This document shows, piece after piece, positions 5,921 through 35,600 of a stretch of 64,000 bases of DNA. The notes below the pieces were generated by a model that had not been told where the DNA came from, made no database searches, and was given only the letters and a program-made list of their open reading frames with translations. Position 1 is the first letter of the stretch; every line of letters starts with the position of its first letter. The position numbers and the translations under genes were made by a program. Source of the DNA: Amphiscolops sp. MND2022 (taxonomy: Eukaryota); NCBI GenBank assembly GCA_964187785.1, contig OZ076412.1, positions 23,126,001 through 23,190,000 on the forward strand, in the 5' to 3' direction.

Positions 5921-6340
5921 GAATTAATGGCAAAATGGAGAAAAACGACCATTTGTTCAATGCTGATTGTTGCAATTGTTTCTATTGCCTATATGCAAAG
6001 AAAGAAACTGATATTTGCTCATTTGTTTGATGATATTTGTTTATTTTAAAAAGTTTTCGATTCGAAAATAGTTCTGCTGAAAAAATATTGATTAATGGGT
6101 ACAATGGGAACGCTTCTCATTCAGTTGAATGAATCGAACTGGCGCCAACTAAGCATGGCGACAGGCGCTGGAATGCTTTTCGTACAGAACTATTATAGCA
6201 GCAAACATCGGGAAAATTGTTCAAAACTTGCATAAAACTTCAAAAGTAGATAGCATTTTGACTTTTATCATTTTAGGTTTTCAGAATTTTTTTGCTCCTA
6301 AACTACTTTTTTGACGTTTGAAATGCATGGAAGGAACTAG

Positions 6341-6869: not shown

Positions 6870-7117
6870 GATTATAGCATCAGAGTATCATAATTAGTTT
6901 CAAAGGGGGGCTCCTTGAGACTCGTGAAACGCTTTTCTCTTACTGAAAACCCAATAGTTTTTCAATCGAAAACTGATTGATGGAATTTCAAAAAAATGAG
7001 AACTTGAGTTGAAATTTCAGTTTTACGTAAAAGGAAATTTTAAATGATAATTTGTACACTTTATAAGCATTTTATAGTGGTACGAAGTTGCATAACCAAG
7101 TTTTTCCGAATTGTTAA

Positions 7118-7618
7118 TTTTTAGTCGGCGCTTTTATAAATAAAAGAGCCCGACTATTACAGTCACTCGTTTTTTTTCTTTAAGACAGACTCGAAGCGAC
7201 GAACGTTAAAATTAACGTTCAACTACTAAATACAGTACTAAACTACTGGACCCTGGACCGGCAAAGGCAAACGGGGAGCGCATTTAGGATAGTGCAAAGG
7301 GTCCCCCCTTTCAGTTACTCCATTTTTATCGTAAGATACAAAACAGGACGAGACTATAGGGTTTGAGTTTTTTTCGGCACTGTGCGACTTTTTTTCGAAT
7401 TTTTTTGTCTCCAAAGGGTCCCTCATGTTTTTTGATATTTTACAGCAAATTGAAGTTTCAAAAAGCCCAAAGGGTCTCCCCTTTCAAGTTTTTTGGCACT
7501 GAGACTGGCTCAAAATTCTTATTTTTCGATTTTTCTTTTTTTTTCAAAAAACCCTTTTACAATTTCAAAAAGTTTGAGCCTTAGATATGGCGCCGACTTG
7601 AGACGTTCCCGTCTTGTT
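7118..7618 (+). mobile_element. HINE-like family A copy
   Basis: TTTTTAGTCGGCGC 5' end; GGCGCCGACTTGAGACGTTCCCGTCTTGTT 3' end, a hairpin variant (GACG-TTCC-CGTC). Confidence 0.7.
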
Positions 7619-8412
7619 TAATATTTCTGCTTTAGTAGGAATGTTATTGAAATCTCAAAATGTCTACTTTTTTTCAGTACAATTCTTGGCACGATACTGA
7701 ATAATTCAGATATTTTGTTTCGGCAGTGACTATAAACGTAAGAATTAAGTTTCTCAAGCTGCCGACGACAATTCAATTCTCGTGCGATGGAACGAGCGAG
7801 TGGTAATTATGCATTCGTATGCCGACGTCATTGAGATGAAGCGAATGAAGGTTAATCATTCGTTCGTTGAGAGCTTCGCCTGCATTCAAATGCGAATGCG
7901 AAACTTCGTCTTCGCTTAGTAGTTATACACATTTTCTTTAGTCCGAGAAGAATTAAAGGCGGTGTAAACTTGTACAGTGATTAATTGTGCGCTGAATAAT
8001 TATTAAACAGGAGTGTATTGGTATTCCAGATATGATTCTGTTAATTAATGAAAGATTAAAGCAGAAATAGTACCGAGCCCCGGAGGGGCTTATTTTCGAA
8101 ATGCAGGCATTATTTGAATGAAATTTGAGACTACATTTTAGGGAAAAATTCCCATAAAAACATGGGAAACTGGAAGGGACAGGTGTGAGACTTTCAATCA
8201 TCAGAATTTCGTGAAAAATGATTCAAATGTCATTAACCTGACTCATAGAAGCATATCTGAAAGTGAATCTGGTTAGAGGTTACTTCAATGTTCCATTTTC
8301 GGCCATAACATCGGATGCAGCTTCGCGAGGACTATTGAAAGTTTTTTGTTCCGAATTTTTTTGTAACGTTTAGCTGACAAATAAGTGAAAATGATTGTCA
8401 ATTTTCAGATTA

Positions 8413-8602
8413 ATGTCGTCGAACTTTCTTAGGAGCTGCATCCGATGGAACCAGAAGTGTGTTGGAAGTAGTCACTTTTCGTCCCTATCATCCTCCAGTT
8501 CACGACATGCTAAGGCCAACACATGCAGTGCCTCGTTAGCACTGCTCAGTCGTCGGCCATTTGCCACTGCCGACAGCGTGAAACCTGATCACTCTACGCT
8601 TG
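8413..8602 (+). CDS. AASS: AASS exon 1 (mitochondrial-presequence-like N-terminus)
   Basis: [12 protein letters not shown]...[23 protein letters not shown], rich in Ser/Arg with no acidic residue until after RRPF. Donor G|GTGAGT (phase 1) joins exon 2 to give TL-A-IRRED. Confidence 0.8.
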
Positions 8603-11600: not shown

Positions 11601-14600
11601 GAAAAACAATAATGCGATAGCATTATATCAGATTTTTGCCTCTGTCAAAGCAACGATTTTATGCCGCACAGAAATATCGGCTTGTTTTCGCATGTTTCGA
11701 CATTAGAATGGAAGAATGTCTGAAAATTGGAATGGAAGGAAGTGTGAAAAAATTAATGAACAGATTTTCGTTTGAGAGTGGAAACATTTCACAACACACT
11801 GTAATTCAAAGCCCCTGTATAAACCAGGTGTATTGTCTACTGTGCAGTTTTTGGTGATTTCGCAAAAATCAAGAACGATTCCTCTTTATCACATTAATTT
11901 TCCCCAAATGAGCCGACTGCAATGCTTCATCTTCGATGATGATAATCACTTTTAATTGAATATTGATCTCGTTTGCAACCCCGAATTCCACCCAATCTCT
12001 TACTTTTCCTCGTTTTAGGAATACGAACTAGCTGGAGCCACTATTGAAGAAGATATCAGATCTGCGGCTCTCGTCGTGGGAGTGAAACAGGTGCCGATTG
12101 AGAAGCTGATCGCCAACAGAACTTACATTTTCTTCAGTCACACAATCAAGGCCCAGGAAGCTAATATGCCAATGTTGGACGAGATGCTACAGAAAGTTCG
12201 TTCTCACTATTTTTCTGCTGCAAAGCCTCAAATGGCGATTTTGAAACTTTTGAGTTGTCTCTGACACGTTTCCCAATGGTATCGGTGTCGTGATCGTTTT
12301 TTTGAAAAGGTTGAATATACAAAAATACTGCAGTCGTTTGTGTAAAAGTTGGGGCTTTGTATTTGACAGCAAGAATGGGTGACTTTGGCGATCCTGGCTC
12401 AAAGATTTACCGCAACTTTTTACTTGTTGTTACTTGAGGTTATCTAGAGTGAAAACCTATGAAAATTAGAACCTCAGTTTGCTGTTTAAATAAAAATTCC
12501 GCCAAATGTTGTTGAGAAGTTCTATCTATAATGTTGCATGTGTTTCAGAACATTCGCCTTGTAGACTACGAGTGTATGTCTTCCAATGGGAAACGAGTGA
12601 TCGCATTTGGCAAGTGGGCAGGTGTTGCTGGTATGATTGACGTTTTACATGGGGTGGGCCTGAGACTTCTTGCTCTAGGTCATCACACGCCTTTCCTGCA
12701 CATTGGGCTGGCCCATAGCTACAGAAATAGTGAATTTGCCAAACAGGTCAGCAGAAAAATTAGTGAACATTTATCATTTTGACACTTCTTGGGGGTTTGT
12801 GAAAGTTATTGATTGACAATACGCTTTCGTTAGAAAACGCAGACTATGGTTGTAGCCTTCTAAAGACCAGCGAACTGACGGATTTCGATAATGTTCTTTT
12901 ACTTCTTCATTTCGTTTCCATGTGTGCTGCTTTTTGCACATGACGAAGTCAATGTGCATTGCAGTCCAGCTAAGTAAGTTTTTTTCCACAATAGTCAACT
13001 TCATAATGAGCGCCTTTTAGAAAAGAGCCAAAACCCCAGAGAGATTCGAACCTGTAGCCTCCCGCTTGCACGGCATAAGTGTTGACCACTGTGCCATAAC
13101 CACGTTATTGAACAAAGTTGAACTGTTGAATATATACGCATGCGATTAAAATAATATAAATACGCATATTAAAATAATGTCTTCGTCATGTGTTGCGAAG
13201 CACCGCTTCGCCTCTGTGTTGATATTTTTCGTCCACTGGTGTCTCCTGTTGTTTTTTGGCACTATGCGACTTTTTCATACATCAAATATTTTCTGAGAAT
13301 TCTTTTCGAAATTTTGGGTTTGATGTTTCGAGTTTTGGAAAAGCTGTTTTCGGGTCTCAAGGGTCCCCTTCTGGTATTTTTCGGCTTTGTAAAATTGATT
13401 TAAAAAAGTTTCACAAAAGTTGTCTTTTCGCATAAATAAAGCACTTTGCTTTTTTTAAAACTTGCGCGGGACGCCGACTTGGGCCCTTCTCGGCTTTTAT
13501 TCAAGATGGCTGTTGCGAAAAAATTATGAATTGATAAATGAAAGTGTTTGTGGACCTTGAAAACCCCTGATGCTGCTGCGATGCATGTTTCAAACAGTAT
13601 TGAAGAAGTCTCCGTAGTTCTACAAAACTGAAAATTAAATAGGCTGCTTTTTCGTCAAATAATTGGATTCGGAATCAAAGAAAATGTAGCCCACAAAATT
13701 TTGGCTTTATATTTAAACATTGGTGCGATCTGATGGAAGAATAAACTTTTTTTGTAAAAACTCACAGTGCCAAAAATCCCCTGATCATACGGGATCCTTT
13801 TGGTCTCGTTCACCTTTGCGGTATTGAAAAAAAACTTTATCCATCCCGTGATTCTAACCCATGTCACCGCCACTACTTACAGTTTGCGTTTTTTCCTAAC
13901 GAAATCGGCGACTAAAAACAGCGACCAGCCTCATTATCGTTTGAAGTTGATTTTAACTCAATTTTCGTCGTAAAACTTTTTTTAAAAAAATTCAGCGCTT
14001 AGCTCATGGCTTGCGAAAAATACTCGTTTGACACCAAATAATCTGAGGACATAAATCATCTGCATCGCAACATAGTTCATTAAAAAACTCAATTGGCTAA
14101 AATCTCATTTGATCGATGATAGCTAGATAAAAGTAGTTCCACAAGAGGGCCACCACAAGTGCACCATGAAAAGTACTGTTTCATTATGCAAGTATATCGA
14201 ATAGTTTCGGAGATATTAATGGCCTTCTGACTGGAAATGGGAGTCTAAGCTCAGCCTACCTGAATTTTCACATAACAAAGAATATCATGGAGCTTGCTTT
14301 GGTTCAATGTTATGTTTAGCACTAGAACATGAACCTCTGCCTCAGACATCTTTCAGAAATTTTACTGCATCACAAATACTCTCGGAGACATAAGGCTTAG
14401 ATATCCAAATATGGTAAAATTTAGCATGTGAATGAACATTTTTGTCCTAAGTAACAACTTTAGCGAGATAAAAGTAGTTGAAAAGTAGGTGAAAGTAACC
14501 TACGAAAATGCTGAAAAAGTGCACTATAAAAGTGTTCACCTATTACGCCAGTACCTTGAATTATGTTGGACATATTAGTGGCCAATTGGTGGGAAATGCG

Positions 14601-17600
14601 ATTTCGCAAACTAACCAATCAGTCTCCTTTCTCACGAAATGAGACTGATGGAGCCTGCCCTGGATACTTGTGCACTAAAACATGACAATTGCCTCGGGCG
14701 TCTTTCAGAGGAAAAAGGTTTTACTGCCTTGCGAATACTCTCTATAGGCCTTAGAAAACCAAATAGACTATGTTGTCGCATTTGATCATTGAACAATTTT
14801 CGTCGAAAGTTGCCCTAAGGAGCATCGTTAGCGGGATAAACATAGTTTCACGAGTAGGCATCGGGAATGCATCATGAAAAAGTATAACCCATCATGCCGG
14901 TAGCTTGAATGGTTCCGAAGATATTAGTAGCCAACTGACTGGAAATGGGATTATAAACTCAATCCGCCAAATTCTCTAAAATGCCGGACTTTGATGAAGT
15001 CTGATCTGGTTGAACCCCCCAGCACTAGAACATGGACAATTGTCTCAAACATCTTTAAGAAGAAAAATCTTTGTATCTGATACTCTCGAAGATCAAGGCC
15101 TTAGAAAACCAAATATGCCTAATACCAATTTTTTTCAAATTCGGCGGCCATTGTGTTACGTTGAAATCGGCCATTTTGTGGTGCATCCCTATTTTCATTC
15201 CAAGTGAATCTTGGAATGATCTGATGAAAAATATTCTTGTTCTGTAGTTAATACTATTTTGGGTCGGCGCTTTTCTTGAAAAGAGCCGACTATAGTCATC
15301 GCTTTTCGTCAGTGTTTTTTTCGATACACCTGAAGTGACTAAAATAGTTCTACAAAGTTTCATGGCGTCAAAGTGAACCATTTGGCCCAGCGAACAGAAT
15401 CAAAAAAGTTTTTCCTTTTTTTCCACGTATCATACAATACCGGGCGAGACTAAGGGGTGACACCTTTGAGTTTTTTCGGCACTGTGGGACATTTTTTCCG
15501 AAAAAAAAGTATCCCCAAAGCGTCCCCCTTCATTTTTTTTGGAGTTTTGCGACAGAATGGATGTTGAAAAATTCCAAAGGGACCCCCTTTCAGTTTTTTC
15601 AGCATTGTGAGACTTTTTTTTCAAATTTTTCATAAAAGGGTCCCCAATTGACGAATACTTTGACATTTTGAAGGCCTTTTGCTATTTTTGAGCCTTAGAT
15701 ATGGCGCCGACTTGGGCCGGTCCCGGCTTGTTTCTATCATCAATGTTTAATGAAAATAGTATTACCTCTGTAGTGCTCGTTGTATGTATACTGTGATTTT
15801 TCACGTAGGCAGTGCGAGATGCAGGCTATGAGATAGCTCTGGGAATGATGCCTGACTCCCTGGGTCCCCTCACAGTTGTGTTCACCGGCAGTGGCAACGT
15901 GTCTCAGGGCGCCCAGGAGGTGTTCTACGAGCTGCCCTACGTCTTCGTGGATCCATCTGAACTGAAATACTGGGCTGAGAACGGAGGTGAAGCCAATTTC
16001 AAAACTATTGTCCTATCATTTCATGGAAAGGGCTGCAGAAAAGCTTTGTTCAATTGAAATGTTATTAAAATGCATCAACCATGTTTTAAACAAAAAATGA
16101 TTTCAAAATTCTCGCAATGAAGACCAGTTTTGCGTCCTCTACAATCACTGGAATCCATTTTGCATGTGGTAAATTCCCATGAGTTCCCATGCATGGCCAT
16201 CCACGCGCCATACATGGACAATTTTCGCGGTCTGAATAATCTTTCCACCTGCCTCAGAATACCCCACATCTTGTTATAATGCAAACCATTATCTGAAAAT
16301 GAGTTCGGAAGTCAAAGGCTGAATTAGGGCGCTCATTTCTTGTTCTTAGATCTTTTCAAATGGTGTTTCAAAGCTCTTCTTTTTTTAGATCGAGGTGCGT
16401 TAGACCTAAGAGGCTTAAGATTGACCAACAATCAAGAAACTATTGTAGTTTTCTCTTAGTATCATAATCCCCGAGGGAGGGATGTCATAACCTAGACATC
16501 TGCGGGCACAATTTATCATGTATGCAACCTGTTGTTGAACTATATGTGACCATCGATAAAATTTTGACATGGCATTGTAACGCTGCTTCTAGTGTATTAG
16601 GGGGTTACCAGACAAAAGTGCCGAAATACGCAGTGAAAAGCACCCCAATCAAAGACTAAAGAGGATTTTCTGACTTATTCTTGCAAAAGTAGATGGGAGA
16701 CCAAAGGGTCCCCTTTGGGTTTTCTTCAGGATTCACGCGATTTTTTTGCTTTTTTAAACCGAAACCCCTGCCTCGATTTTTAGCCGAAACAAAGCGTTTT
16801 GCGAGGATAAGGGCCACTTAAGGTTTTGTTTCGGTACTATGTGCGAGGTGTTCTGTAAAGGAAAATTTTCAAGTTTTTTCCGAGTCTTGAGGGTGACTTT
16901 TTTGATTATTTTATGATCCTGTGGAACTGATGATTTTGTCAATGATTGGGTAAAGGACCTACGGTTTTTTTTGGCACTGCAATTTTTTTCGATGATACCC
17001 CTTCACTTTAATAATTCTTTTCGGCCAACAAAAAGCGTTTGGCGAGGTTAAAGCACCTTTTTCGTCACCATGAGATAATTTCCCGCAGAAAAAAATTTTG
17101 AAAAAAAATTATTTTAAAAAATCAGATTTTTAATTTTAAAATTAAAAAAATAATAATTTTAAAAAATTGTCGACTACTTATGCAATCGTACCTTTCTTTT
17201 CATCCAAAATGTTGAAATTTCAACAAAAATATCCTTTGCATATTTTAAAAAACATTCAATTTTTTGAACCTCAGCAGGGCGCCGACTTGGGCCCAACCCG
17301 GCTTGTTTCTATATTTCAAATGAAATGGGAGTGTTTGTTCTGCACTGTTGATTAATCATCCCGGATACCCCCTTTGTATTAAAAATACCTACCCACACAA
17401 ACATTCAATGATGAAATCTTACAACAACGCTTCTTTTATTAGTATTTTGCTGTTCAAAGTTTTGAAGTTCAAATTTCGGAAAAAAATTGGACTACTTATG
17501 CAATCGTGTCGTTTTTTTTCTCCCGACCTTTCAATGAAAATTTGAAAATTTCTCAAAAACTGTCCATATGATTTTCATAAAGTTTTGCACAGTCATTCTA

Positions 17601-20600
17601 CCCCCAAAGGTGCTCCTGCTTGCGCAATGGCATCAAAATTGTATGAGTGGCATCTGAGAAACATAGCCAAAATTAGCCCAATAATGGCCAAAAAACTGGC
17701 TTTTTTGGACCTTTTTAGATTTCCTCAAAATCTATCCTATCCATACGATTCGAACGAAATTTCTATAGTCATTCTACACCATATTAGAATCCTATGTGTG
17801 CGATGGCATCAAAATCGTATGACTGGGATCTGAGAAACAAAGCCAAACTTAGTCCAAAAATTAACAAAAAAGGGTCATTGTTCCGAACCGATCTCCGTAA
17901 TGAGTCCTCTGGAGGTTTATGAATGCTTGCTGTATTTCATATTCTTGACTGCGGGAAAACCTTCGTTACTTATTCAGTCAATTACGAATCAAAATTATGT
18001 GAAAATCAATCATGTATGAATCATTCATTCAGAATATATACCACATCCCCTTCTTTGAATTCAAATCGTAGGAGGATTTCAAGGAATAACAGAGAAACGC
18101 ATGAATATATTAGGTTATACTTTAATAATTCATTGTCCCGCTTGAAATTTATTTTTGTTGTATTCCTGATAGGATACCGTCTCATTGGAACATCGGAGGA
18201 ATGATTTTCCGATCGCGTATTATCGGAAGAAGACAACTCCAGATCATCAAAATAGTTGAGATCTTCTATTCTTTTATTTGAGGCAGGAGCAACTTGGGAT
18301 AAACTCCAGGTTCGCCCATCATCAAGTGTAACAGTAGTTTTAGTTCGTTTAAGAATTTTCTGCGGCTTGAAGAACTTGTAGTGCAATTTCCCTTTTTGTC
18401 GAATTGGATCTTTCACTCGAACCCAACCACCGACTTCGAATTTTTTTAAATGATTTTGTTTCTGCGCCGATAGACCAGGGAAGACGTTTGTGTTGTTTAA
18501 ACTCTTGGATGGAAGTTTTGCTAAAAGCGCTGTACATTTCGTTCTCATTTTGTTCCCGAAAACCATTTCATAGGGAGATTTTCCCAATGCAGGATGAATT
18601 GTACTTCGATAAGTTTAACACAAATTTCAATGTATCATACCAGCTGCGTGAATCTTCAATATTGGTTTGCAATAAATTTCGTATGGTTTGATTGAATCGT
18701 TCAACGAGACCATTACTGCGAGGGCAGTACAATGGGCTATACTTCAGGGCAGCACCTTGATGAATGATAAAAGTTTTGAACTCCGCACTGGTAAACGAAG
18801 AACCTTCTTCACAGCGAATTAACTCAGGTACCCCAAAACGAGCAAAATAATCTTTTAAAGATATAACTATTTGTTTCGCGTGCGTGTTATCAAGCGCATA
18901 AACTTCAGGCCATCTCGAGTATTCATCAACAACAAGAAGCAAATACTTGAAGTTACTCGGCGCATCGTTGTAAGGACCACTAATATCTATATTGATCGTT
19001 GTAAACTTTTCATCTGCTGTTATGATTTTGCCATGCGGAACATCTCGAACAACTTGTGCTTTATCGGTCTCACAACAAGCTGAACAACTTTTAACCAGCT
19101 GTTCCAACATAGCTGAACACTTTGGCCACCAAGCAAAACTCCGCAACTGATGTTTGGAACGGACAATTCCAAAATGATCTTCATGAGCTAGTTGAAGAGC
19201 TTTCGAATAAAGACTTTCAGGCATTACAATGGCTGCACCGCGACCTACACTGTATTTAGACCAACAATAAGTTCATTCCGAACTGCAAAGTAAGGTAGTA
19301 ATTTTTCATCCATAACATTTCGTCTGGGCCAACCATTAATAATGAAATCGCGCACTTTGATCAAAACTTGATCCTGTTTGGAAGCATTGTCAACTTCATC
19401 AACAGTGAAAGCAGACAAGTTATCAAAAAGAGCATTTACAACATACGAATCATCATCAGTAAATGAACAATCAACTGGTAATCGTGAAAGCGCATCAGCC
19501 ACAGCATTACTTTTTCCAGGTTTGTGTACTACAGTAAAATCATAGCGTAGTAACCTGGCAGACCAACGTGCAAGTCTCAGTGGACGGACACCGTCCCCAA
19601 TTTCACCATTTATAAGTTGCAGTAAGGATTTATGGTCAGTCTTTAATGTGAAGTGTTTACCCCACAGGAATCTTTCGAATCTCTCGCAAGTACAAATACA
19701 AGCTAGTAGTTCCTATTCAGGAACACTATATATTTTTTTCAAATTCTTGTAATGAACGAGAGAAAAATGAAACTGTTTTGTATTCACCATTATCTTGCAA
19801 CTGTGATAATTCACCACCGATTCCAATTTTGGAAGCATCACATGTAACAATCGTTTCTGCCTGAGGATTATACATTGCCAATGGTTTAGCACGAAGAAAC
19901 ATTTTTTGAAGGCATTTGAACTGTTCGGTAAGACCCTCTGTCCACTTAAAGGCAACATTTTTATGAAGTAATTTATAGAAATCGGCAGCTTTTGAAGAAT
20001 AATCACTCGGTAAAAATTTTCGATAGTGACTGAATAAACCTAGAGCAGAAGCTAAGGATTGTTCATCGTAAGGAACTTTCATTTCAGCGATTGAAGTCAA
20101 ATTGTTCTCAAGAATAGCAAATTCGTTCAGACCCAGTTTGAGGCCTAGCCATTCAATGTTTGTTTTCTCAAACTCACATTTGTCAAAGTTAGCTACCAAT
20201 CCATTGGATTGCAATCTATTCAATACAGCATTTAATCTTTCATCATGTTCTTCCTTTGTAGAACCATAAACAATGATGTCGTCAAGAAAACTGAAACAAC
20301 CTTTCAAGTCAGCTAGGATTTTATCCATCATTTTTTGAAACTTCGGAGGAACGTCCCGTAACCCAAATGGAGCTCTCAGAAATTTGTATAGTCCACAGGG
20401 TAAAATAAAACCAAGCATACGTTGAGTTTTTGAATCGACTGGAAGTTGATGGTAAGCGTTAGATAAGTCTATTTTTGAATAAACTTTTGCATTAGTTATC
20501 GAATTTATAGTAGACTCAATGTTAGGTAAGGGGTAAGTATCTTTCTTTATCGCTTTGTTTACTTCTCGCAAGTCACAACAAAGCCGAATTTTTTCATTTT

Positions 20601-23600
20601 TTCTCCATAAAACAACATGAGGACTAGCCCAATCGATATCGGCATTGGTACAGGGTTCAAGAACACCCAGTGAACAAAGTTTTTTAACTTCCTTCTCGAC
20701 ATGGTCTTTCATTGCAAAAGGAAGAGGACGATCTTTCGAAATGACGGGAGGAATTGTTGCATCGATTGCTGAAGACAAAACAAAGTTCTTTGCATGACCT
20801 AGAGTGTCGGGGTCAAACAATTTTTGAAATTTCTGCTTGAGGATACTTCCTGGACTTGTTTCTGGTATGCAAGTATGTACACGATTCAATTGTGTATCGT
20901 TTATCGATATTGCAAAATGCAGTTTATCTAGAATGTCGGGGCCAATCAAAGAAATGCCATGAGCTACATAAAAGTCTTGTCTGAATGACAAAGAACCACT
21001 CATGATTTCGAAGTTAGAAATTCCATGAGCATCAATAGAAGAACCACCATAACCAGTTATTTTTGAATGGTTTTTGATGCACTTTTTGTTTGGGAATAAT
21101 TTGTCGAACGTATCTTTAGAAATAATTGGTGCCTTGGCACCACTGTCAACAACAAATACAACATTTTTGTTGTCCAACTGTAAGGAATATTTGAAGAATT
21201 CAGGAAGAATCGAATTGAAAGGACTATTTACAGTAAGGGTAACGGGTGTAAAAGAATTTTCTCCCAGAGTGTTTGTGACAACAACATTTGAACTCGCACT
21301 ACGGCACACTTTTGCAAAATGACCAGTTTTGTTGCAGTTTTTGTATTTCTTGTCCGCAGCCGGACAATCTTTACTGTTAGCGAAATGTAATTTGGATCCA
21401 CAACGAAAACAAGAATGGATAATTTTAGCAGTAGATTTCGATTTTTGTTGACTGATTTTCGAATTGAACCGCTGTACAGTGTGGGTATTACTATGAGCAG
21501 TGTCAGTGTAATTTGTATTTTTGAGTAAAACAGATGTAGCAATTCCCGCTTCGATTCGTTTAGCAATTTTTAGACATTCTTCCAGAGAAGGGTTATCTTG
21601 AAGTAAGCGATCTCTTATGCGAATTTCTCTAACTCCTTTGATTAACTGATCTCGCAGAGATGTATCCAGAAAAGCACCAAAATCGCATTTTTGAGCAAGT
21701 CGTCGTAAAGCAACAACAAATTCATCAATACTTTCACCTGATTTTTGAATACGACACCCAAATGAATAGCGCTCGGAAACTACGATGACTTTATCAGCAA
21801 AATGATTTTCAAGGCATTGTAAAACTTGTTCATAAGTATCATTAGCTATTTGCGTATCATCTCGTAAAGAATAATGAACGGTCTGACCTTCAAGTCCAAT
21901 TAAATGGAGCAAAATAGCTTTTTTTCTGTTACTAGCCCACTCTGCGTAGTTTGTAGCCGCCATGTAATTATTGAAGAGGCGAATCCAGTCCTTCCATGGA
22001 ACTCTTGGTTTCCCGGGATCAGGTAAAAAAGGTTGGGGCGCAGGTAGGTTGAAAGTTTCAGACATTGGTTTCACTAGTTTTAGTTTATCTCTGTCGCCAT
22101 TTCATATTCTTGACTGCGGGAAAACCTTCGTTACTTATTCAGTCAATTACGAATCAAAATTATGTGAAAATCAATCATGTATGAATCATTCATTCAGAAT
22201 ATATACCACACTGTAAAAGTGAAGTTGCTGAGGAATTATGGAAGATGTAAAATGATTGCTGTTTCAGAGAAGAATCGAGTGTACGCATGTGTGGTGAGCA
22301 GGAAAGACTACTTGGTCCATAAGCAGACGGGCCAATTCGACTTGGATCATTACACTGCTCACCCTGAGGAGTACGAGTCACTCTTCGCAGAAAAGGTTGT
22401 TTTACATAGTTACAAGACATTTTTACTCAGTCACTTGCTACTAGGGTCTATTTGCTACTAGGTAATTTGCTACTAATTCTTATTATGGGGGCTACGAGCT
22501 GCTAACTATGGGACTATGAATTTGAAGCTGAAAAGACAAGCAGATCCTCCTGTAGCAAGTTCACAACTCAATTACAGTGGAAGCCGCTTATATGGGACGC
22601 CTTGGGACCGGGTATTCTTGTCTACTATATCAGTTGTCTCTTATATCAGTAGTACAAAATATTTGCTTTATTTCAGCGGGGACCGAAATATGCGAGCCAA
22701 TTAAGCGTCGTCTCTTATACGCGTGTCCCATTTAAGCGGCTTCCACTGTAACCGGAAGTTTTGACAAATTTTGTGCCAAATTCCATGAAACTTGATTTTC
22801 TTAATTTACTAATTAGTCTCATTTCTCACTTCGTAGTAGCACGGCTAATTCATAGCATTTAGCGTAATAGCATCAGACACCGTTGTACATTTAGTTTTGG
22901 AAAATCCCAATTTCGCTGCAGTTTTTCGGGATCATGTTTTAAGCTTGAAACACTTAATGCTTCATGGAAATCCCCCGACTTTGTTTCATGGTTTTTTATG
23001 GCAGAGTATGAACACGGTTTTACTTATACACATAAAAGCTCAACTAGTTCTTCTCAGAAAAGCTTCTGTGCTTGAAACTATGAGACTATCCTGTGCCAAA
23101 AATCAAATACCTAATTTGTTCAAAAGTCTCCCACATTTGAATAAAACTGCTTACGATTGAGGTCAAAACAATCAACTTTTTAAGCGGCGAAATAGTTCTA
23201 CTGTCTCTTCAGAACTGTCTTGATCTAGCAAAGAATAATCATGAAATTATGATGGTGTTTGTGTTTCAGTTCGCACCGTACACGTCGATTTTGGTGAACG
23301 GCATCTTTTGGGCAGTGAACTCGCCCCGCCTAGTGAGAAGAGAAGACCTCTCGTCTCTGTTGACCAGTCCTGACTCAGACAGCAGCAAAGTGTTTGTGGA
23401 CGGATGTCCCCCCTTGCCTCACAGGGATTATCAATGACACTTTTTTTACTTTTAATAATACAACCATTGGACCATGTTTCCTTTTGCCCCAGGTGCACCT
23501 TGTTTCTACCCCACGAATACCTTTTTTTTTGCTGACAAAATTCTTGCACGAGTAAAAGAATATTTTATGGCTACATATACTTAGAGGATTGTCTTTACAG

Positions 23601-26600
23601 CTGTTTTAACACTTCCTGCAAAAGAAGGCTCTGATTTCTTCATATTAATGTCTTCATAAAATTCAGGTCTGAAACAACCAAAAATTGTATAGGAAGACCC
23701 CTAAGTTTTCTCCGCCCTAGAATATTAGCAACTTTTAACTGAATTAATGTAAAAGATAGGATTATGTCGGCATCAATTATTTTATTGGAACGAAATATCA
23801 GCGCATATTATTTCCCCCCGCGGCCGCCTGAGGGGCGGTTCAACAAGAAACATGGTCGCAATTATTTACTAATGAAAATTAGTAATTTCCTTCTGATGGT
23901 TCCGATTGTCTGTGTAAACCACTGTTCTTCTTACAAGGACAAGATGTTGTGCAGAAAATGGAAAAATTATACGTGAAATGAAAGTAACATCCAAATTGGA
24001 CAATTGTTTTGATGCGAGTCAGTAAAAAGTTGAAGTTTGGAAATTTTAAAAAGTAGCAAAGGGTTACTATCTGAATGAATTTTTGGTTAAAGCTCGATGT
24101 TCTGGGAGGTTTCAATAATAATTTTAGTGGCGTCATTTTAGGAGACGAAAAAATTTTCGACCACTTATGCACTCGCACCCAAAGGTGCACCTGCGTGCGC
24201 AATGACATTAAATCGTATGACTGGGATCTCAGAAAGATAGCCAAAATTAGTCCAAAAATGACCAAATGACAAAAAAGTACGTGATTTGTTTTTTCAATAG
24301 TTGAACCGTTTCCAACTCCTTTACCGCATACGCCGCTCTGATTACTATGTGTAACTTTGAACTACTTCCAAATTGTGAACTGAGGAAATACTTAGTTCAG
24401 TGAATTGTTTGTTCCAACTGAATTCGTTTATTTTATTCCAATGTTAACATAATTTCGATGATCCCTTCATTGCTGGTAGAATGATAGCAGTATGTGACAT
24501 TTCTGCTGACCCTAATGGCTCTGTGGAGTTTACAGATGTATGCACTACCATAGACCAGCCATTTGCTATGTACGACAGAAATGCTGATCGACACGACAAG
24601 TAAGGCACATGCAAATTTTGTTCATTCAAGTTTTTGAAAGATTCAAATATCTTCACTGATACATATACCATGAAACTAATTCTTCAGTAGTCAAAATCCG
24701 TGGAAAAACTTTGTTGTGAATTTGGTTTAAAAACGCAGCTGGGAGTATTTATTTCCTTTCAAATAAGTTTGTGCGATTTTTTAGTCGGTGTTTTGAGCGA
24801 AGACTAAATAAAATCGCCAGACAATTACTCACTTTTCCAAGACAGGCTTACACCCGATTTAATCGGATAGGGTGGCCACTCCAGTTTTTTCCACATTTAT
24901 TGAATGACACTGTACGAGACCGGAGAAGCCCCCGTTTAGGTTATTTTCTCGGCACTACGATTTTTTTCGAAAGCTTTATTCCCCCCAAGGGCGCCTTTTG
25001 TTTTTTTTACTTGTTTCTGGTTGTAAGCACAAAGGGTTCTCTTTAAATACTTTTCGGCAGTATTATTCGCCTAAATAACGCCCCTAGACTTACTTGAACA
25101 CTTTTTTGCGCTGTGTGAGCATTCGTTTTGGGCTGTTCTTGACTTGTTTCTTGAAGTGAATGAATGATGAAGTCACTGCAGTGAAATGGTAATAGTTTCT
25201 GTTTTTGTAATGATCATTGTTGTAATGCTTATTGTTTTGTTGGTAGCGTGGCTGGCGAAGGTGTGCTTGTGTGTTCCATCGACAACATGCCTGCACAGAT
25301 CCCCACAAAGGCCACTGAGTACTTCGGGGGACTGCTCGCACCCTACATCCCCGAACTCCTCACCTCAAACGCAGCCACACCCTTCAAAGATTGGAACCCC
25401 TCGCCAGTCATCAAAAACGTACGTACGTTCAATGGTCAACCTTGATTGCAATGATCAATTAGGTAGATTTTTAGCCGTGGCTTATGGCGAAGGTTGATAG
25501 GGAAAATTTGTGTTCCCGTCAGGGATGGTAAAATATCCGATATTTTAAAAAAATCAATAATATCCGATATTATTAATTTTGAGCCCGATATTTTTGATAT
25601 TAATGATATTTTTGATATTTTAAAAAAAACCGGTTGTTTCAAAAAAATGAATTATATTCATTTCTTACAAATGTTTCAATCAACATTTTTATTTAATATC
25701 TTGAAGTAAAACAAAAGTTTTGCAGCCTTTTCGTTGCCCAGGCGATTCCGTTGTTCATCGTGAATCCATCCGAAAGTCGAGAAAAGTCTTTCAAGAGGCG
25801 CAGTACTTGGTGAGCTGGATACTTTTCCCAAACATCGGCCGATTTACGACCAGGTGCCATGTCTATATCTAAAAAATATCAAAATCTGATATTAATTGAA
25901 ATAATATGATATAAATCATGATATAAATCAATGATACATCCCATGATATATCTCCCATCCCTGGTTCCCGCAAAGCAATGATTTGCTCGAATTTACTTTA
26001 TAATTGGTTTGATTTTTTTGCGCTTCCTCAAGATGAAGTTTTGAAAGTCATACGAGATTTTTGTTAATTTGGACTTCTGTAAAAAATTCACGTACGGGGA
26101 TAGAAAATGGCACAATCATATGGCGCTCTGATTGTACAGTTTTGCCGCATGCGATGTCGATCAAATTAAATAGTGGTAATGCGAAGAGCGAAGCCATGTA
26201 TGATCCTGCTATGTGCTCAATTCTTTTCAAGTCGCTCAAATGTATCCTTCTCAACATGCTCAATGTGTTCATTTTGATAGAAACTTTGAAAAGTTGAGCA
26301 TTTTTCTAGAGCGCTGGTGTTTGGGAGTTGAAAACTATCGAATGAACTAAACAGAACATCCTTCGGTTGTCATATATCATATCCCCCGTGCAAACAGAAG
26401 TTGAAAATGTCAAATTTGGAGAATTCAATTCAATTATGCTTTTTTCCCAAGGATGCTATTTGGTGTTTGTCTTGAACTGCTTTTCAAGACCAGGTCAACA
26501 CCATTGATAAATAAAATAGTGATAAAATCGACTTCAAACGTTTTGTTTCTCGCCGTTAACTCGGGGCGGAAAAATTGTAGAAGATCTTATGCAATAAGTT

Positions 26601-29600
26601 TTTCATTGCAGGCTTTGTGGTATGTATTCAGTCACCGTAACTGTCGACTGGTATCAATGTTCTGAAACATATATACTCAGTGTCTGTTGTCAATGTCTAA
26701 TTTTGTTGAACACACTACAAATATTGTCTGTCTCCATTCTCGCGGTTTCAGATTCAGTAGAAAAAAATGTAGCCCTCTCTTTTACATTTTACAAATTGAT
26801 ATGGTCAGTGCTTTAAGATTGACTTTACATTGACTAACAAATTTTCCTTGCCGTGGTAAAATTTAAGTATTCTGGTTGATGCCCCTATTTGCCGGAGGTG
26901 GGGTGTACTAATAGTAGAAGGCCTCATTGAGTAATTTGACATTTCGTTTTGATAAGAGGTAGATTTTAACTTGCAGGGGACGGCCCAAGTCGGCACCCCG
27001 CTAACGGTTCAAAAGAGTAAAGTTTTTCAAATGTACAAAAGGACAGTATTGTTGAATTTTTTTTACATTTTTACTGTGCCGAAAAATAACCGAAAGGATA
27101 CGCATAAGACTCGAAAACAACTTTTCCCCAACGAACCACAAAAGTCCGTCTTTCTGAAAATTATTTCCCTTCGAACATTTTTTTAAAAAGTCTCGTAGTG
27201 CCGATAATTGAACTGAAACTCGCAAAACGCTTTTTTCAAGCCGACAACATTCATGATTGTAAAGGGAGTACACTTTGACCAAGCAAAATTTTCGGAAAAA
27301 ATTCCCACAGTGCTGAAAAACACCGTAGGTATTTTTCAAAATTATTGAGAAAACTCTCATCAGTTCCGCAGCACCAAAACAATAATCAATAACGTCTCCC
27401 TTGGGACTCAGAAAACCTTAAACCTCAGAGCAGAAAACCTCAAAAAAAATTGAAAAATAAGTTCACAAAAATGTTTATATGAATAATCGATAAGTCGCAT
27501 TGTGCCGAAAAAAACCTAAGACGGCCCTCTATTTTCGCCGCTTTTTTCCTGCTAAAATCAGAAAGGGGCACTTCGTTTGAAAAAAAAACTGCTGTGAAAA
27601 AGTCACAGTACCGAAAAAGTCTAACGTTGGTTTCCCCTCTATTTTTGCAAATATAAAAAAAACTGGTTTAGTCCGAGACTCGCACCGTCGTAGTCCTGCT
27701 TTTCAGTCCCCGTCACAGGACCGGAAATCTGAGTTAATGTTTCTGTTCGCTGGTCTTGAAAGAGAAACGAAATTATATAACGCAACCTCCACCTCCTCCT
27801 TAGTAAAACGCAATATAGTTTGGATGTAACGTCAAAATTTGAATATAGCGCAATATTTTTGAACCTCTACCTCCTCTTTAGTGAATGCAAAGCACAAAAA
27901 GTTTCTGGCTGAAACAGGGACTCGAACCCGCGACCGCTTGGTTCCCAATAAACCGATTAATATCTACATCAAAAAGTGGTACATACAGAGTCTGACTAGT
28001 TTTCCTTCGTTTTAAACATACAATCCGGTCAAAGTTTCTGAAATGATCTACTTTCAGTCTATGTTCTAAACAGGACCAAAGTTTTTAAAGGTCGTTCCTT
28101 TCTTTTTTCTTCGGATTCCAATTAATTCTCTATATTTCTGGCATTGTTTTCGAAACTGGTAATGGTAATAACACTCGCTACGGATTTTTTATGTTTTTAT
28201 TTGGAAAAAAGGTCCTAAAAAAGGTTTTATAAAACTTTTTCGTCGTAAGACAACAGAATGTATGCGTAGTGGTCACTTTCTCAGCACTTCTAAACCACTG
28301 GACCGTCTAAGTTTACACAAAAAGTCTTCCCTCTTTTTTTCCATTTTAACGTAACATACAAAATCGAACGAGTCTATAGGGTCCCCTCTTTCGTTTTCGG
28401 CTCTGTGTGACTTTTTTGTCGAAAATTTAATAATGTCACCAAAGGGCCTTTTGAATTGTTTGATTTTGCAACAAATTGAATGGTAAAAAGCCTAAATGGT
28501 CCCTCTTTTACATTTACCGGCATTTTGAGACTTTTCAAAATGATCATTTTCGGCTTAAAATTAGGTTTTCTCAGTGGCCCAGCACGCTATATCCGAAGTT
28601 TTGACGTTATATTCGAAGTATATTGCGTTTAACTAAGGAGAAAGCGGAGGTTCGAAAATTTTGCGCTAGATCCGAATTTTGTTTTAAGACTCGTTTTTCG
28701 GTACTATGCTACTTTTTTGTAGTTGTTTTCATCGACGCCCCCCCTCGATTTTTACTAGGAAGAAAGCGTTTTGCGAGCATAGAGGACTCCTTAGGATTTT
28801 CGGCACTATGCGACTTACCGGAGACATTTTTGGAAAAAAAATTCGATTTTTTTGCAATCTTTTGTTTCTTTAGAGGTTTTCGGTTGAGCAAAACTTTTCC
28901 CAGTTTTAAGGGTAACCTGTGATTATTTTTAGTCCTGTCGGACTGATGAGTGTTTTCGCAACAATTGTGCAAAAGACCTTCGGCTTTTTTTCGGCACTTT
29001 GTGACTTTTCGAAACAGTTGTCTTTCGGTAAAATGGTGCCCTCATTCACTTTTTACAAAGTTTTTGGCTTGAAAAAAAACGTTTTGCGACTTCTCTGGAC
29101 TCCTCTGGGTTTTCGGTACTGCGAGACTTTTTCCGAAGAAAAAAATCTATTTTTTCCCAAAAAGTGGGTTTTTGTTGTTTCCAGTTTGAGAAAAAGCGGT
29201 TTTCGAGTCTTTTGCCTATCCCATCGGGTAGTTTTTGGCACTGTAAAATTGAATAAATTTAGCAATAATCCTGAGCATATCTCTAACTTGGCGCTTTTTG
29301 AACCTTACGTATAGCGCCTACTTTAGACGTTCCCGCTTGTTAGTTTCCATGAACCTATTGTTTTAGAAATTTGTGACTGATTTTCTCCAACTAGTTTTCT
29401 TATCAATACATAAATAAATTCTCCGATTTGTTTGTTATTAATTGATCTTTTGAGTGATGTTTCTTAGTATGAAATTTTAATCTGTAAATTGCCAAATTTT
29501 TCATTTCATGTGACCTTGAAGGCCCATCTGAGAACAATTAAATGTTTTCGCCCGACTAACAGCAGTTTTTTTGCATGTGTTTGCGAAGCTAGGCTTCGCC

Positions 29601-32600
29601 TCTGTGTCTAACTATCTTATCAGTTAAGTTACATACATTTCATTGATATGACTACATCGAATGCAAAATATCCCAAAAGTTTTCACTTTTGTTCTTATGT
29701 AGAAGATTAGTTCTTTCATCAAACAAATTATATCACGAGATTTGGATGCCCCCTGTGTAAACTGTTAACACTTCTTTTTTAGGATTCAAATTTTAGGACT
29801 GTTTCGAGAAATCTGCAGGAAATTGAAAATGTACCTCAGCAAATTTTCAGTGACTTTTTATCCCAAAAAATTATATGGAATTGACAGTTTTACATTTTGA
29901 ATTTTTGCCAATGTAGAGAAATATTAATGAGCCTCAAAGCGGCCGATTTTCTTTGTGACATCAAGGCAAGCGCTGATACGAGTATTAGTTTTCACCTTTT
30001 ACCGTCAGAAGCTACGCGAGACCGACCACCTTCGGCAAATAAGTCACCTTAGGTTATTGTCTGAGATCCTCGTGAAGTTTTGTCTCTGTATGAAATTGTT
30101 CCGTAGTCCACGGTGACTTGTTGTCTCACCTTAGACCGTCGCAACCTTAAGCTATGCCTTGTATAAACTCTGTGGGTTATAGTGACAAATAAAAACAAGA
30201 CAATGCTTCTCTCTCCGAGCGCCCTTTCTTTAATGTTGGCATTCCTTGATAGAACATTAACTTTTCCTCTGGAGGTGTTGGCGAGAAAAACTTCACGAAA
30301 ACAGTTTAGCTGAGGTTGGAAGAATTTTTATCAAGAGATTGTATTCAAAAACGCAACTTTTTTTCAGTTCTGCAACTGATACAGGTGAAGTAAGTAGGTA
30401 TATAATCTGTGTTTAATATCGGTGTATACTCTGGTTGAAGTTGAAGAATTATTGGTACTAAAATTTATGCTAATTGTCCCAAACATAGCTCATTGAAAAA
30501 TTGCTTTTGCATTTGCTTGAAAAAGTTGGTGCAATAATGTTTTGTTTCTGCGGAAATGAATGAAACTGAAGAAATATTAAAAACAATCTGTGCACCTTCA
30601 TTACACACAAATCGCAGTCCGCTCATAGTTGAATAAGAGTCGGGATTTTCTTCGAAAACGCCGACTAAAAATCGTTAAGTCCTTCAACATGCAGAAAAGC
30701 TGTTTTTGAGAAAATTCACAAGATCTCCTGTTACTGATTAAAAAATCCGAAGGCTTTTGGTAATAGAAAATATTGAGAAAGGTGAACCTCGTTTAGAAAA
30801 ATTGTTTTCAAAAAAGGCTGATGAAAACAAAATTACTAATTTTGCTGGTAGTCGCAATAAAAACGCTCATGATAAAATGTATATCACCGATGAAGCTTTT
30901 TCTGATTATTATTTTCACTTGATCAATCACCCAGTTCTTCACTTGATCAATCACCCAGTTCTTCACTTGATCAATCACACTTTCCCGAAAAGAAACCTCC
31001 TGTGTCTGAGAGAATCTGGGCACAAATCTTATCACATATCGAAAACTCTGGCAATATCTGGCATGAAGACTCCTATTTGGCTTTTGACGATGTGAAATGT
31101 TTTGTTTTCAGGCCGTGATTTGCTCGAATGGGAAGTTGACAAAGCCTTACGAGTATATAGCCACGCTTCGTCAACACAAACAGTGAGTTCACGCATACTT
31201 CGATACAACTAAAAAGATTACAGATTGTCCAGTTGAAAAAAGCCGGAGAAAAAGTTGCTTTTTTGCTATATCCTTCGATAATCTTCGCGGCATAGCATCG
31301 ACTGATTTCGCTTATTCAAAATCCATGCCCTCGTCATCTTTATATCATTTAATGGAATATCTTCAAGAAGCCTTTCAAGTTATAAACCGCATACGTAGTG
31401 GCTAAATGTACTTGGGTAACTTCTGAAATGATAATGCCCACATAGCTTGAAAGTCTAACTTCATTTGGCCCCAAAAAAGTTCAGAAAGTTACTAACCCAT
31501 GTTGTTCAATTATATGAACATTTCCCCATTTGAGGTGAATAAAAGCTCTGGAAAAAACGGGTTCTCAATTCAACATGTTTCAGAAATTTTTAAGTTGATT
31601 AGAGATGCAGTCCTAGTTTTTTGCTTTACTGCATTTATAACTAACAGGCCAACTTCAATTTATGGTATTTGTACAATTAACTTCTAGTTATATTCAACGG
31701 TTAATTATTCCACTTTAATGTTACAGATTGAAGCAGTTAGTAGCTATTCTTAAACTCCTCCCAAAGCGCACTTCTAAAATTACTTTCTGATTCCAATACC
31801 AAGTTTTTTTACTAAACGTCTTTCTCTAATACTACAGACACAGGTGATTCAGCGAGATACCAACAATCTCAAAACAATAAACTTTGACTCCAAAAATGCC
31901 ATAGACGTTTGAATACCCTGTGTATTCCACACCTTTCTGCTTTAATTAATATCCTTCTATGAAACTTTTCGTAGCGCAATTGTTTTGAAACTGCTAGTTA
32001 TCAAAAATTGAAATTACACTAAGGTACCAAAAACTAAAGACACTCGATTTTTATTATTTCTGCGATAGCAGGAATAATATTAACCCTCTTCTGCATTTTG
32101 TTACCTAAATGTAACAAAGCCGCGGATCTATTTTCAGCCACGCACACAACAATTCATCTTACAAACATTGCGTCATCATCACATGTGAATAAATTCCGAG
32201 CTGTGAAGCTGCAATCTGATTGGTTCCGAAATCCAAAAAATCAACAGAGTAGACATTTATGTGTATGTAGCCTAAATGTAACATTGTGCAAAGTTGCATA
32301 TTTCTTAATTCTACCGGCAGTGTGTACACAAAAAAAAACGAAAAAATGATACTTATCTCTGCTTGACATCCAGCAAAAACTGTTTTACGGACTTTCATAC
32401 GAAATAATTTGTAAACTCTCGTTTTCAGATGCGAAAAGTGCAAATTTTGGTCGAAATGAAATAAATGTGATTCACACTGTTTTCGTTTACCAGTATAGTG
32501 TTACATTTAGGTAACATACTGAAAATCTATATTGAGATTTCTAGTCTGAAAAAACTTCATAACCATATGAGAAAATGGTCTACCACCTGCTAGTTGAAAG

Positions 32601-35600
32601 GGTCAAATAATTTTTTTTCGATGGTTTTCAATATTCATGCAGAAGAGGGTTAAATCTCAACAATTCAACTTTTTTAGTTCAATTTTTGTCGTGATTTTGA
32701 GTACAGTACTGTGATTAAGAAAACGTCCCCCGGGCGATTTCAGGCTCGATTTTCTCAAAATCGGTCGAGAATTTTGAAAAACATCAGATATAAAACTTTC
32801 TTAGAATTTCATGTAGTTTACATTAGTGTTTTTTAAATTTTTCTGGGATTAAAATTGAGAAAGTCACAAATAGCTGATTTTGAGCAAATTTAGGACTTTT
32901 TGCCGTTTTTCCGATTTTTGACCGCTTTATCCACACTTGTTTTGGCAAGTTTTATGCTCAATTAACTTCCACAAATCTACTGAATTAATTGATGTATTTT
33001 GATTTCAAAATAGATCAACCGTTTCCAAATTATCAGGCTCAAAATGTAAAATTTCCTAAATTTACGTGAATTTCATTTGATGCGCCAATCAGAATTGAAA
33101 GTGAGACCAAATAAACAATTTTGATTGGTTGAGAACGTCATAGGAGGACGATTTCTTAATTACAGTACTGTACTTGCTGAAAAATTTATGCAATTTATTC
33201 GGCAGTGAGTGGTAAGCGTGAGATTTAAATTTAAAGCTTCCCGACAACAATTCGTTTCTTGTGCGATGGAACGAGCGAGTTGTAATTATGCATCCGTACG
33301 CCGAATTCATTGAGATAAAGCGGCGGTGTGAACTGGTAGATTGATTAACTGTGCGCTATATAAATGATTAAGATATGCTTCTATTATTGAACATGAAAGC
33401 CTAAAAGCAGAAATAATACTGTCACGGAGCGGCCTATTTTAGAAGATCAATATCTTTGAATTTATTATTTCACAAGAATAGTCTCAAGAATGAAAATCTT
33501 GCAAATTTCGATCAGAATTACAACAGTTTTTTTAAATTTCCTAGTCGGATCAAATTTTTATTAATGTAGCAGAAACTATTTTAAGGAGTTTTTAGAATTT
33601 TTCGAACTTTATTGGGCAATGCCTCAAAAACTGGTTAGAAAAAACCGTTTTCTATCTTTTTGTAGCCTTGGCACCGTCCTTAAATTTTCATATTTAACAC
33701 TTCTGAAAATTTTTTCTTGAAAAATGGATGTCGAAAAACCTATATTTTCTTTAAAACAATAATTCGGATTATGTGATCATTTTGCTGTGCAAATTCTTAA
33801 GGAGGTCATTTTCAGAAAACATCTCAATGTCAAAAGTTAGACATCCGAATCAAAGGTACAAAGTTTCTTTCAGGCATTTTTTTGCTCCGAACAGCAGTTC
33901 TCAAGATATTGCATGATAAATTTCACAAAAATGATAAAAGTTGAAAAGAAGCTAAGTGATGTAACTTTTGTAGTTTCTGTTCGATTTCAAAACAAATTAT
34001 ACCGCTGTAATTCTGATTGAAATGTTGTGGAAAACTTTTCACCTGGAACTTTTGTGTCAATTGAATATGTGATTTTTTATTGCTGTTTGATATTTTTTGT
34101 GAGTGAAGCTAAGTTTCACGAAGTTCATCTACGGATCTCATTACTTTTCAGCAAGGGCGGATTTGAAGGGGTTGCGGGAAGGGCTTGAGACCCCCCCCAT
34201 TCAAATGGAACTAATTTGAATAACAAGATGATGAAAAATAATGCCATGGCGAGGTTTTTCTCAGGAATTCATCTTGACACTTCGACTACTGAAGTCCTAT
34301 TTGAGAAGCAGGATGGGCCAAGAAAACCTTACAACTATGGCATTAATTGACGTGCATAAAAACGTTGAAATAGCTAGATTTGGCGTGAAAAATAGAAGAC
34401 TTGATTTCTGAATTCATGTTTCTAAAGTGTTGCCAAAGGACCCTGTAAAATTTTTTTGAGTCCGCCATTGGTTTTCAGGGTTGGCCAATATAAAACATGG
34501 GTGTTTTAAAACACGTTTTAAAAGTTTTTACACTTTTCTTTTGAATGAAATGCAATCCAATCAAAGATTATTTTTATTTCATGTAAATGAAATCAATGCA
34601 GACAGGCAAGTAAGTGTCAAAATGAGTAATTTTATAAAATATCAAGTGAATATGAAAGCCTATCCTGAATAATTGCTGGAATTGGTACTCGGAATGGTAA
34701 GAGGTATTAATACCAGAGGTCGAAAGACCAGAGGTCATAAAACCACAGAGTCAAATTACCAGACGGTCAAAATACCAGTTAGAATCGAACGATTGCTTAA
34801 TTTGAGGGCGATGTTTGAATACGCGTCTTGAAATTGACTAGCGTCTTGACTTCAATTAGATTTGCTTGCAAACTTTCTTTAAAGGTTGCCGCTTTTGAAA
34901 CAAAAGTACCAGTTGCATTAGTGATGTCAATTAGACTGTTGTTCGAAAGCGTCCTTTTACACACTAATCAACAATAATTAAGTGTAAACAATGATCTAAA
35001 ACTGAAGCTAAAAATTTAAGGTTGAACTGTCAATCAACCTTCTTTTAATTTGTGGAAATGATAATTGTTCAGCACTAAAATTCTGGTATTTTTGTTGCTT
35101 GTTATAAATTACATTTGAGTTGAATTAGTTCGAATTGATTTTAGCACTAAAATGATTTCAATGCTTTCAGAATCGAAAGTGTTGCAATAATTTTTTATGA
35201 CATGTGATGAAAGGGACCATTCACTAGTTTGTGCTTATCGAGTCGTTGACAATAGTTGCACTAATTAAATAATTAGAAATGAATAATCGATCTCCAAATG
35301 AGTCTTTTTTACGGTATTAGAAAGAAATACTTCGTGGTACATAACTTGGTTTCCTAATCCTCTGGTATTTTGACCGTCTGGTAATTTGACTCTGTGGTTT
35401 TATGATCTATGGTCTTTCGACCTCTGGTATTTTGACTTGCGGTATTTTGACCTGACACCACTCGAAATGGTATGTCTAATGCCTGGTACCGGAGAAATTA
35501 GAAAGATTTTCTCAACAATGGGATTCATCCACTCTGATCTTCGCAACAGCATTGGAGTTCAGAAAGTTAAAAAATATTTTAGTGATGCAATTTTTGAATG

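Follow-up and report, generated by a model that had tools for sequence, protein, structure and literature searches.

How is the message of a conserved gene put together when one of its exons runs into an intron that begins with GG? The question is raised by the gene for AASS (LKR/SDH), a bifunctional enzyme of lysine breakdown, of the acoel Amphiscolops sp. MND2022. Its mapped portion, 17 exons with 2,631 nt, occupies positions 9792..57361 of a 64,000-nt stretch of genomic DNA (assembly GCA_964187785.1, contig OZ076412.1, positions 23,126,001 to 23,190,000), which is referred to as the window. All coordinates are those of the window, and the features of the AASS gene described in it lie on the plus strand. 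Few positions of eukaryotic genes are conserved as strongly as the U at intron position +2, and only a few animal lineages are known to ignore it. The explanation considered probable here is that AASS, a single-copy gene, contains a genuine, recently gained U2-type intron with GG-AG ends, which would be removed at 23424^24480. Splicing and recognition of the site are deduced from genomic DNA.

The junction between exons 7 and 8

Exon 7 (23270..23424; E6 in the 17-exon model) codes for FAPYTS...VDGCPPLPH and contributes AG, the first two bases of an arginine codon. It ends ...GGA TGT CCC CCC TTG CCT CAC AG/GGATTATCAATGA, where the slash marks the border between exon and intron and 23424 is the last exon base. 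GG (23425-23426) is part of the non-canonical 5' splice site CAG/GGATTA (23422..23430). Retention of the intron would truncate the protein at an in-frame TGA (23435..23437), which is reached four codons after CAC, and the read-through product ends ...PLPHRDYQ. Exon 8 (24480..24599) carries the final base of the arginine codon, extends to ...RHD and is followed by the donor GTAAGG. On its upstream side a canonical AG acceptor (24478..24479, ..TTGCTGGTAG/A), identical in a second haplotype of the species described below, gives ...CTGGTAG/A ATG ATA GCA GTA TGT GAC. Intron 7 (23425..24479), with a length of 1,055 nt, lies between CACAG and AATG.

The end of exon 7 at CAC AG/GGATTA and the closure of the frame four codons on had already been described in a sequence-only reading of the locus, which had also proposed colinearity with vertebrate AASS across the join. 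Both agree with our data. In phmmer comparisons with human AASS (PDB), exon 7 matched residues 282-329, the alignment ending with ..GCPALPH329, and exon 8 matched residues 331-365, beginning with L331-VAICDISAD. The codon split by the intron is thus the equivalent of human K330, and no gap is left between the two matches. The predicted spliced junction reads ...CCTCACAG/AATGATAGC..., and the full junction segment ...CCTCACAGAATGATAGC....

Donor and acceptor pairs around both exons were enumerated exhaustively, and their products were scored against the protein of a related species and the 944-amino-acid AASS of an ascidian. Only placements equivalent to 23424^24480 preserve the segment. With AG at both intron ends, the placements AG..GT, GG..TA, and GG..AG yield identical mRNA, but a normal acceptor is provided only by GG..AG. 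Among canonical pairs, the best were GC at 23416 with AG at 24479, by which PHR is lost, and GT at 23406 with AG at 24487, by which CPPLPHRMIA is lost. These residues belong to the motif G-[AC]-P-x-L-P-H-[RK]-[MLF]-x-A-x-CDISAD, the spacing of which is fixed in 98 full-length homologs, with P in 98, H in 96, and R or K in all 98 of them. Canonical alternatives would thus remove invariant residues.

One of these weak canonical sites could nevertheless be the one in use, either GC at 23416 (CTT/GCCTCA) with the same acceptor, to give GCPPL-MIAV, or GT at 23406 with AG at 24487. Both pairs are in frame, and GC donors do occur in the AASS gene. However, the invariant residues would be lost and the fixed spacing altered, GC at 23416 is almost without surrounding consensus, and related species encode the whole segment. 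GT at 23406, the only in-frame GT alternative, is abolished in the second haplotype, haplotype B, by a synonymous T to C change at 23407. Use of a weak canonical site is therefore regarded as very unlikely, and the earlier statement that no GT or GC donor keeps the segment holds against 98 homologs. The stated need for a GG-AG splice, if a normal enzyme is to be encoded, is strongly supported; relatives without the intron read the joined sequence directly.

Related genomes lack intron 7

A search of the whole library with exon 3 yielded fragments of related genomes, and three acoel-like genomes proved informative, in addition to a snail. The first, L010 (ENA ERZ25878734; 65-94% amino-acid identity per exon), is contiguous across the site (..CCACACAGAATGTTG..) and reads ..GGATGTCCCCCGTTACCACACAGAATGTTGGCT.. 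on uninterrupted DNA. The closest relative found, L011/P0151 (ENA ERZ26859043), with 86-100% amino-acid and about 80% nucleotide identity in exons, is contiguous as well, as is P0152, a 925-bp contig with 55% identity. In the outgroup, the snail Physella acuta (NCBI assembly GCA_028476545.3), residues 319-409 are contained in one exon, the two borders of which lie close to where exon 7 starts and exon 8 ends. The locus of Capitella gave no clean alignment and was left out of the comparison. In all of them ...GCPPLPH[R/Q]M[I/L]AVCDISAD... is encoded without interruption. The stretch 23425-24479 is therefore a lineage-specific insertion, and the join 23424^24480 is exactly fixed. To judge from these genomic sequences, intron 7 is a recent, lineage-specific gain, an aspect that the sequence-only reading had not touched upon.

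Four further introns of the AASS gene in the window, after 12746, 39316, 39759, and 44680, are missing in L010, and all four have GT donors. In P0025, a fragment of 63 amino acids from a further relative in another public assembly, exon 3 is broken right after ..RLLALG, whereas the window, L010, and L011 show no break at this point. Among these worms, the positions of AASS introns seem to turn over fast.

GG is present on two haplotypes

Reads from one sample, available as k-mer contigs of four runs of unrecorded kind, were compared with the window over 22900-24900. The runs were taken as DNA because the intron is present in them. In three runs out of four (X1, X3, and X4), contigs bridge the donor at a depth of 19-58, with 23425 and 23426 unchanged. 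Differences between the read contigs and the window were found at 23287, 23291, 23389, 23407, and 23439, in addition to an extra T after 23440. Haplotype B stems from a public assembly of the same species that was made separately (ENA ERZ25074608, loci L012-L014); its identity to the window varies along the sequence, with stretches of about 99% and stretches of 92-97%. Its donor region in L013, CACAG/GGATTATCAATGAC, is that of the window. Since the read contigs share the variants of haplotype B, the sample contains both haplotypes, and their read-contig depth is about equal where they can be separated.

Haplotype-specific differences flank the GG dinucleotide 18 nt upstream (23407) and 13 nt downstream (23439), which indicates that GG is most probably older than the split of the two haplotypes. 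A single-base consensus error at 23426, which the sequence-only reading had kept in consideration, predicts a T in the reads. No T was seen; GG is found in the window, in the bridging contigs of three runs, and in the independent assembly of haplotype B. For the genomes sampled, GG as an assembly error is excluded. No evidence was found in favor of a sequencing or assembly error with T as the true base, and practically no weight is given to it.

The comparison of the haplotypes revealed further differences. Divergence within intron 7 is very uneven (window 23439-24640 versus L013 11643-12850): it reaches about 9%, with many insertions/deletions, in the part 23439-23960 and drops to about 0.4% between 23960 and the end of exon 8, which suggests an old recombination breakpoint. 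About 4.3 kb of AASS intron 4 (17935-22210), probably a segregating transposon insertion, are missing in haplotype B, where position 17934 is directly followed by 22211 in L012. The haplotype B contig becomes similar to the window after about 29.9 kb. In ENA contig ctg181681 the window region 25573-29889 is present twice, with 96% and 99.3% identity (L014 reverse complement, 5487-9982 and 10877-17378), representing either a false duplication caused by a haplotype switch or a true tandem duplication.

Integrity of the AASS gene

Exon 7 gave a single match in the 1.07-Gb assembly, and hence there is no second AASS copy to take over the function. The 17 exons of our model join to 877 codons without stop or frameshift, as had been stated earlier for the exons outside the junction, and the 16 introns comprise 14 of the GT-AG, one of the GC-AG, and one of the GG-AG type. 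Residues 34-909 of the ascidian AASS (P0013) are covered in order (tblastn), showing LKR and SDH in one colinear gene. Within the 1,260 nt of E1-E8, 12 exonic differences separate the two haplotypes, and 11 of these are synonymous; the probability of this outcome is near 1e-5 if about 70% of random changes are non-synonymous. All four differences in exon 7 are synonymous, and exon 8 is identical. Accordingly, selection has been acting since the GG-bearing ancestor of both haplotypes. Compared with L010, the proportion of synonymous differences (pS) is about 0.8, which is saturated; for non-synonymous differences (pN), the values are 0.11 on the upstream and 0.15 on the downstream side of intron 7.

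These values bear on the possibility of an early loss of function, by which a former GT donor was lost or the intron was never spliceable. The GG copy would then specify the truncated product ...PLPHRDYQ, which would make AASS a unitary pseudogene of very recent age. A GG donor is normally a dead end, and loss of human AASS is mild. On the other hand, both diverged haplotypes have GG, situated between haplotype-specific nucleotide differences, and 11 of the 12 exonic changes since their split are synonymous. In addition, no other lesion was detected in 2,631 nt, no second copy exists, and pN is far below pS in the comparison with L010. A loss-of-function allele, which had been left as an option before, is therefore considered unlikely.

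Recognition of the donor

The donor CAG/GGA can pair with U1 small nuclear RNA (snRNA) at positions -3, -2, -1, +1, and +3. Genes for U1 are numerous in the genome; six of the eight copies fetched begin with ATACTTACCTG, and all eight keep A-C-C-U-G. A pattern scan gave eight canonical copies but no U1 whose position 7 is a C and would thus be complementary to G at +2. The ACAGAGA box of U6 is intact. The inspection of snRNAs suggested in the sequence-only reading thus showed canonical U1 and U6, and a compensatory snRNA change was rejected as an explanation. The 5' end is altered in two U1 copies (L007 1501-1515 and a minus-strand copy in L008), which read ATATTTAAACCTG and ATTCTTACCTG; both keep C-C-U-G, the part that pairs with the end of the exon and with +1. 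They may be pseudogenes or variant U1s. A candidate U2-type branch site, TGTTAAC (24442..24448), matches yUnAy, and its putative branch A at 24447 is located 32 nt before the acceptor.

Based on these features, removal of intron 7 at 23424^24480 would restore the AG/A codon for arginine and the invariant motif. Recognition would most likely rely on the perfectly matched exonic CAG and on G at +1 and A at +3, pairing with the canonical 5' end of U1. Any base at +2 would then be acceptable to the spliceosome, as reported for the copepod Eurytemora affinis and for larvacean tunicates. From the Eurytemora-like profile of the site we infer that intron 7 is spliced by the major spliceosome, under less strict demands on +2.

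A second donor of the gene deviates from GT. The first mapped AASS intron starts with GC (9924..9925) in a weak context, AGG/GCTAGT, which is the same in haplotype B, whereas the sister species L011 has AGG/GTAAGG at this intron. The change from T to C at +2 is thus derived in the lineage of the window. All mapped AASS introns of the relatives are of the GT-AG type, 11 of 11 in L010 and five of five in L011. Non-GT donors therefore amount to two of 16 in the window lineage versus none of 16 in the relatives, a difference that is suggestive but not significant. Relaxed recognition of +2 in this lineage, as proposed earlier, appears plausible from one GG and one GC donor among 16, the Eurytemora-like context, and canonical U1 and U6, although this support is indirect.

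Intron 7 could also be a U12-type intron with unusual ends, for example AT-AA when shifted by two bases (23426^24482). This placement gives a plausible protein, with HRV in place of HRM, and CCCTTCAT is found 10 nt before the acceptor. Yet neither GGATTATC nor ATTATCAA corresponds to the U12 5' splice site /RTATCCTT, and the shifted donor ATTATCAA matches ATATCCTT at only three of eight positions. The U12 branch site TCCTTAAC, expected 10-26 nt from the 3' end, is approached at best by CCCTTCAT, with five of eight. Searches for U12 and U6atac genes (RF00007, RF00619) gave no match, a weak negative, since each search scored about 45 candidates out of tens of thousands. A U12-type intron is regarded as extremely unlikely.

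A possible split of the gene and points against splicing

A further explanation dispenses with removal of intron 7 altogether. The gene might be split in two, with an upstream message ending in the apparent intron and a downstream part receiving a spliced leader by trans-splicing at the 24479 acceptor and starting with the ATG at 24481. This ATG is located one base past the acceptor, and about 30% of the genes of the acoel Symsagittifera roscoffensis are trans-spliced to a spliced leader (PMC9911081). Spliced leaders are also abundant in the genome studied here: the published 32-nt sequence of S. roscoffensis (PMC9911081) was located at 2,107 sites when up to two mismatches were allowed, at least 100 of them exact, while the reversed control gave no hit. 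By this sequence, with which GC content agrees, the genome is assigned to S. roscoffensis or a very close relative. The copies are dispersed over every chromosome-scale contig (e.g. L015, L016) and not confined to a few tandem arrays. However, the methionine is ancestral, as both relatives have it and so do 48 of the 98 homologs, and was thus not created for initiation. The break would also fall within the LKR domain, requiring reassembly from two chains. No such split is known for AASS, which counts against this explanation as well, and it is considered highly improbable.

Several points weigh against a functional GG-AG intron. In protein databases, no transcript-derived AASS of this species was found with the fused exon of the relative, the exon 7 frame, or the full-length ascidian AASS as queries. 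Beyond +3 the donor fits U1 and U6 poorly, with UUA at +4 to +6. The two haplotypes possibly come from one animal; they document two chromosomes rather than a population. Most of the weight of the polymorphism test lies on the upstream exons, as the haplotypes show only two exonic differences downstream of intron 7, one synonymous and one not. Finally, human AASS deficiency takes a clinically mild course, and loss of the gene might therefore be tolerated. With these points taken into account, a recently gained U2-type GG-AG intron is still the explanation to which we assign a good probability.

Origin of intron 7

Intron 7 is a mosaic, in which repeats are internal and the first 42 nt and at least the last 106 nt are unique. 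A dispersed repeat at 23513..23805 (intron positions 89-381) has a 75% identical copy in the same genome, and k-mer depth peaks in 23570-23837. The second repeat, about 170 nt at 24176..24344 (intron positions 752-920), is present in high copy number; at least 40 copies were scored with 83-88% identity, and read-contig depth rises to about 200,000. Pieces similar to it are located near 17788-17919 and 41419-41742, and the copies share a short open frame (..SKSYDWDLR..). Elsewhere in the window, an open frame at 60282-60689 (..NCPIHRS...WPPYSPDFNPIENFW..) encodes the C-terminal portion of a transposase of the Tc1/mariner type.

A DNA search of the same genome detected no full-length copies of intron 7, and Rfam families were not matched within it. 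Its ends show no target-site duplication beyond the 2-bp AG and no terminal inverted repeat. Like Introners (Gozashti et al. 2022, PMC9860276), AASS intron 7 is a recent gain, but it differs from them in its unique ends and in the absence of full-length copies, of a target-site duplication beyond AG, and of a terminal inverted repeat. An origin as an Introner or from a transposon is therefore not supported.

An intron closed by pairing of its ends was also considered. RNAduplex predicted a possible 10-bp helix between 23423..23432, which would cover the donor, and 24457..24466. Its free energy (dG -15.5; z = -1.4, p about 0.09 against shuffled ends) is within the range of the shuffled sequences and not significant, and both arms are invariant between the haplotypes, so that covariation is not assessable. 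A helix-closed intron is thus not supported.

Comparison with non-canonical introns of other animals

The sequence-only reading had referred to GG donors in E. affinis, and GA/GG-AG introns are indeed published for this copepod (Robertson 2017, PMC5714493). They are characterized by an obligate exonic AG, A at +3 in nearly all cases, occurrence unique to the lineage, and canonical U1. GA and GG together account for about 12% of the donors, with junctions backed by RNA sequencing (PMC5714493). AASS intron 7 shares with them the exonic AG, G at +1, a purine at +2, A at +3, the AG acceptor, and the canonical 5' end of U1. It is likewise young and lineage-specific, is needed for the full-length protein, and resides in a gene with other new introns. 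The two cases differ in that one concerns an arthropod and the other an acoel, and in that a single GG among 16 introns of one gene is set against about 12%. Moreover, the acoel junction is predicted from DNA, whereas those of the copepod are backed by transcripts.

Larvacean tunicates are similar in being an animal lineage with high intron turnover and a major spliceosome that accepts non-GT starts. For Oikopleura dioica, the genome paper reportedly describes non-canonical introns, and the minor spliceosome is reported to be lost; in this acoel genome, the weak searches of about 45 candidates each gave no U12 or U6atac gene. In Fritillaria borealis the 3' AG rule is also broken, which has been linked to duplication of U2AF and changed N6-methyladenosine marks on snRNAs (Soo et al. 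2026, PMC13326754); AASS intron 7 differs by its canonical AG acceptor. In humans, GA donors of FGFR1-3 and rare GG donors make up 0.006-0.014% of introns, are mostly alternative, and need nearby auxiliary elements, according to Brackenridge 2003 and Parada 2014 as cited in PMC5714493. These sites resemble the AASS donor in U2-type splicing at a G-purine dinucleotide, but the AASS donor would have to be constitutive. Full-text literature searches revealed no papers reporting GG or GA donors in acoels.

Implications

It is an evenly balanced conjecture that Symsagittifera-type acoels represent, after the copepod and the larvaceans, a third independent animal lineage in which only G at +1 is needed, given exonic AG and A at +3. 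This permissiveness would go along with an ongoing burst of intron gain, GG, GA, and GC donors would occur genome-wide at the percent level, some of them segregating with GT, U1 and U6 would be canonical, and the minor spliceosome would possibly be missing. Being dated, single-copy, absent in the sister species, and present on both haplotypes, intron 7 offers a natural substrate for studying how a canonical U1/U6 machinery accepts GG. The same intron allows one to ask whether relaxed donor recognition aids the survival of new introns. Acoel genomes serve the reconstruction of early bilaterian gene content, and with predictors that insist on GT or GC, models of acoel genes such as AASS will come out truncated or wrong.

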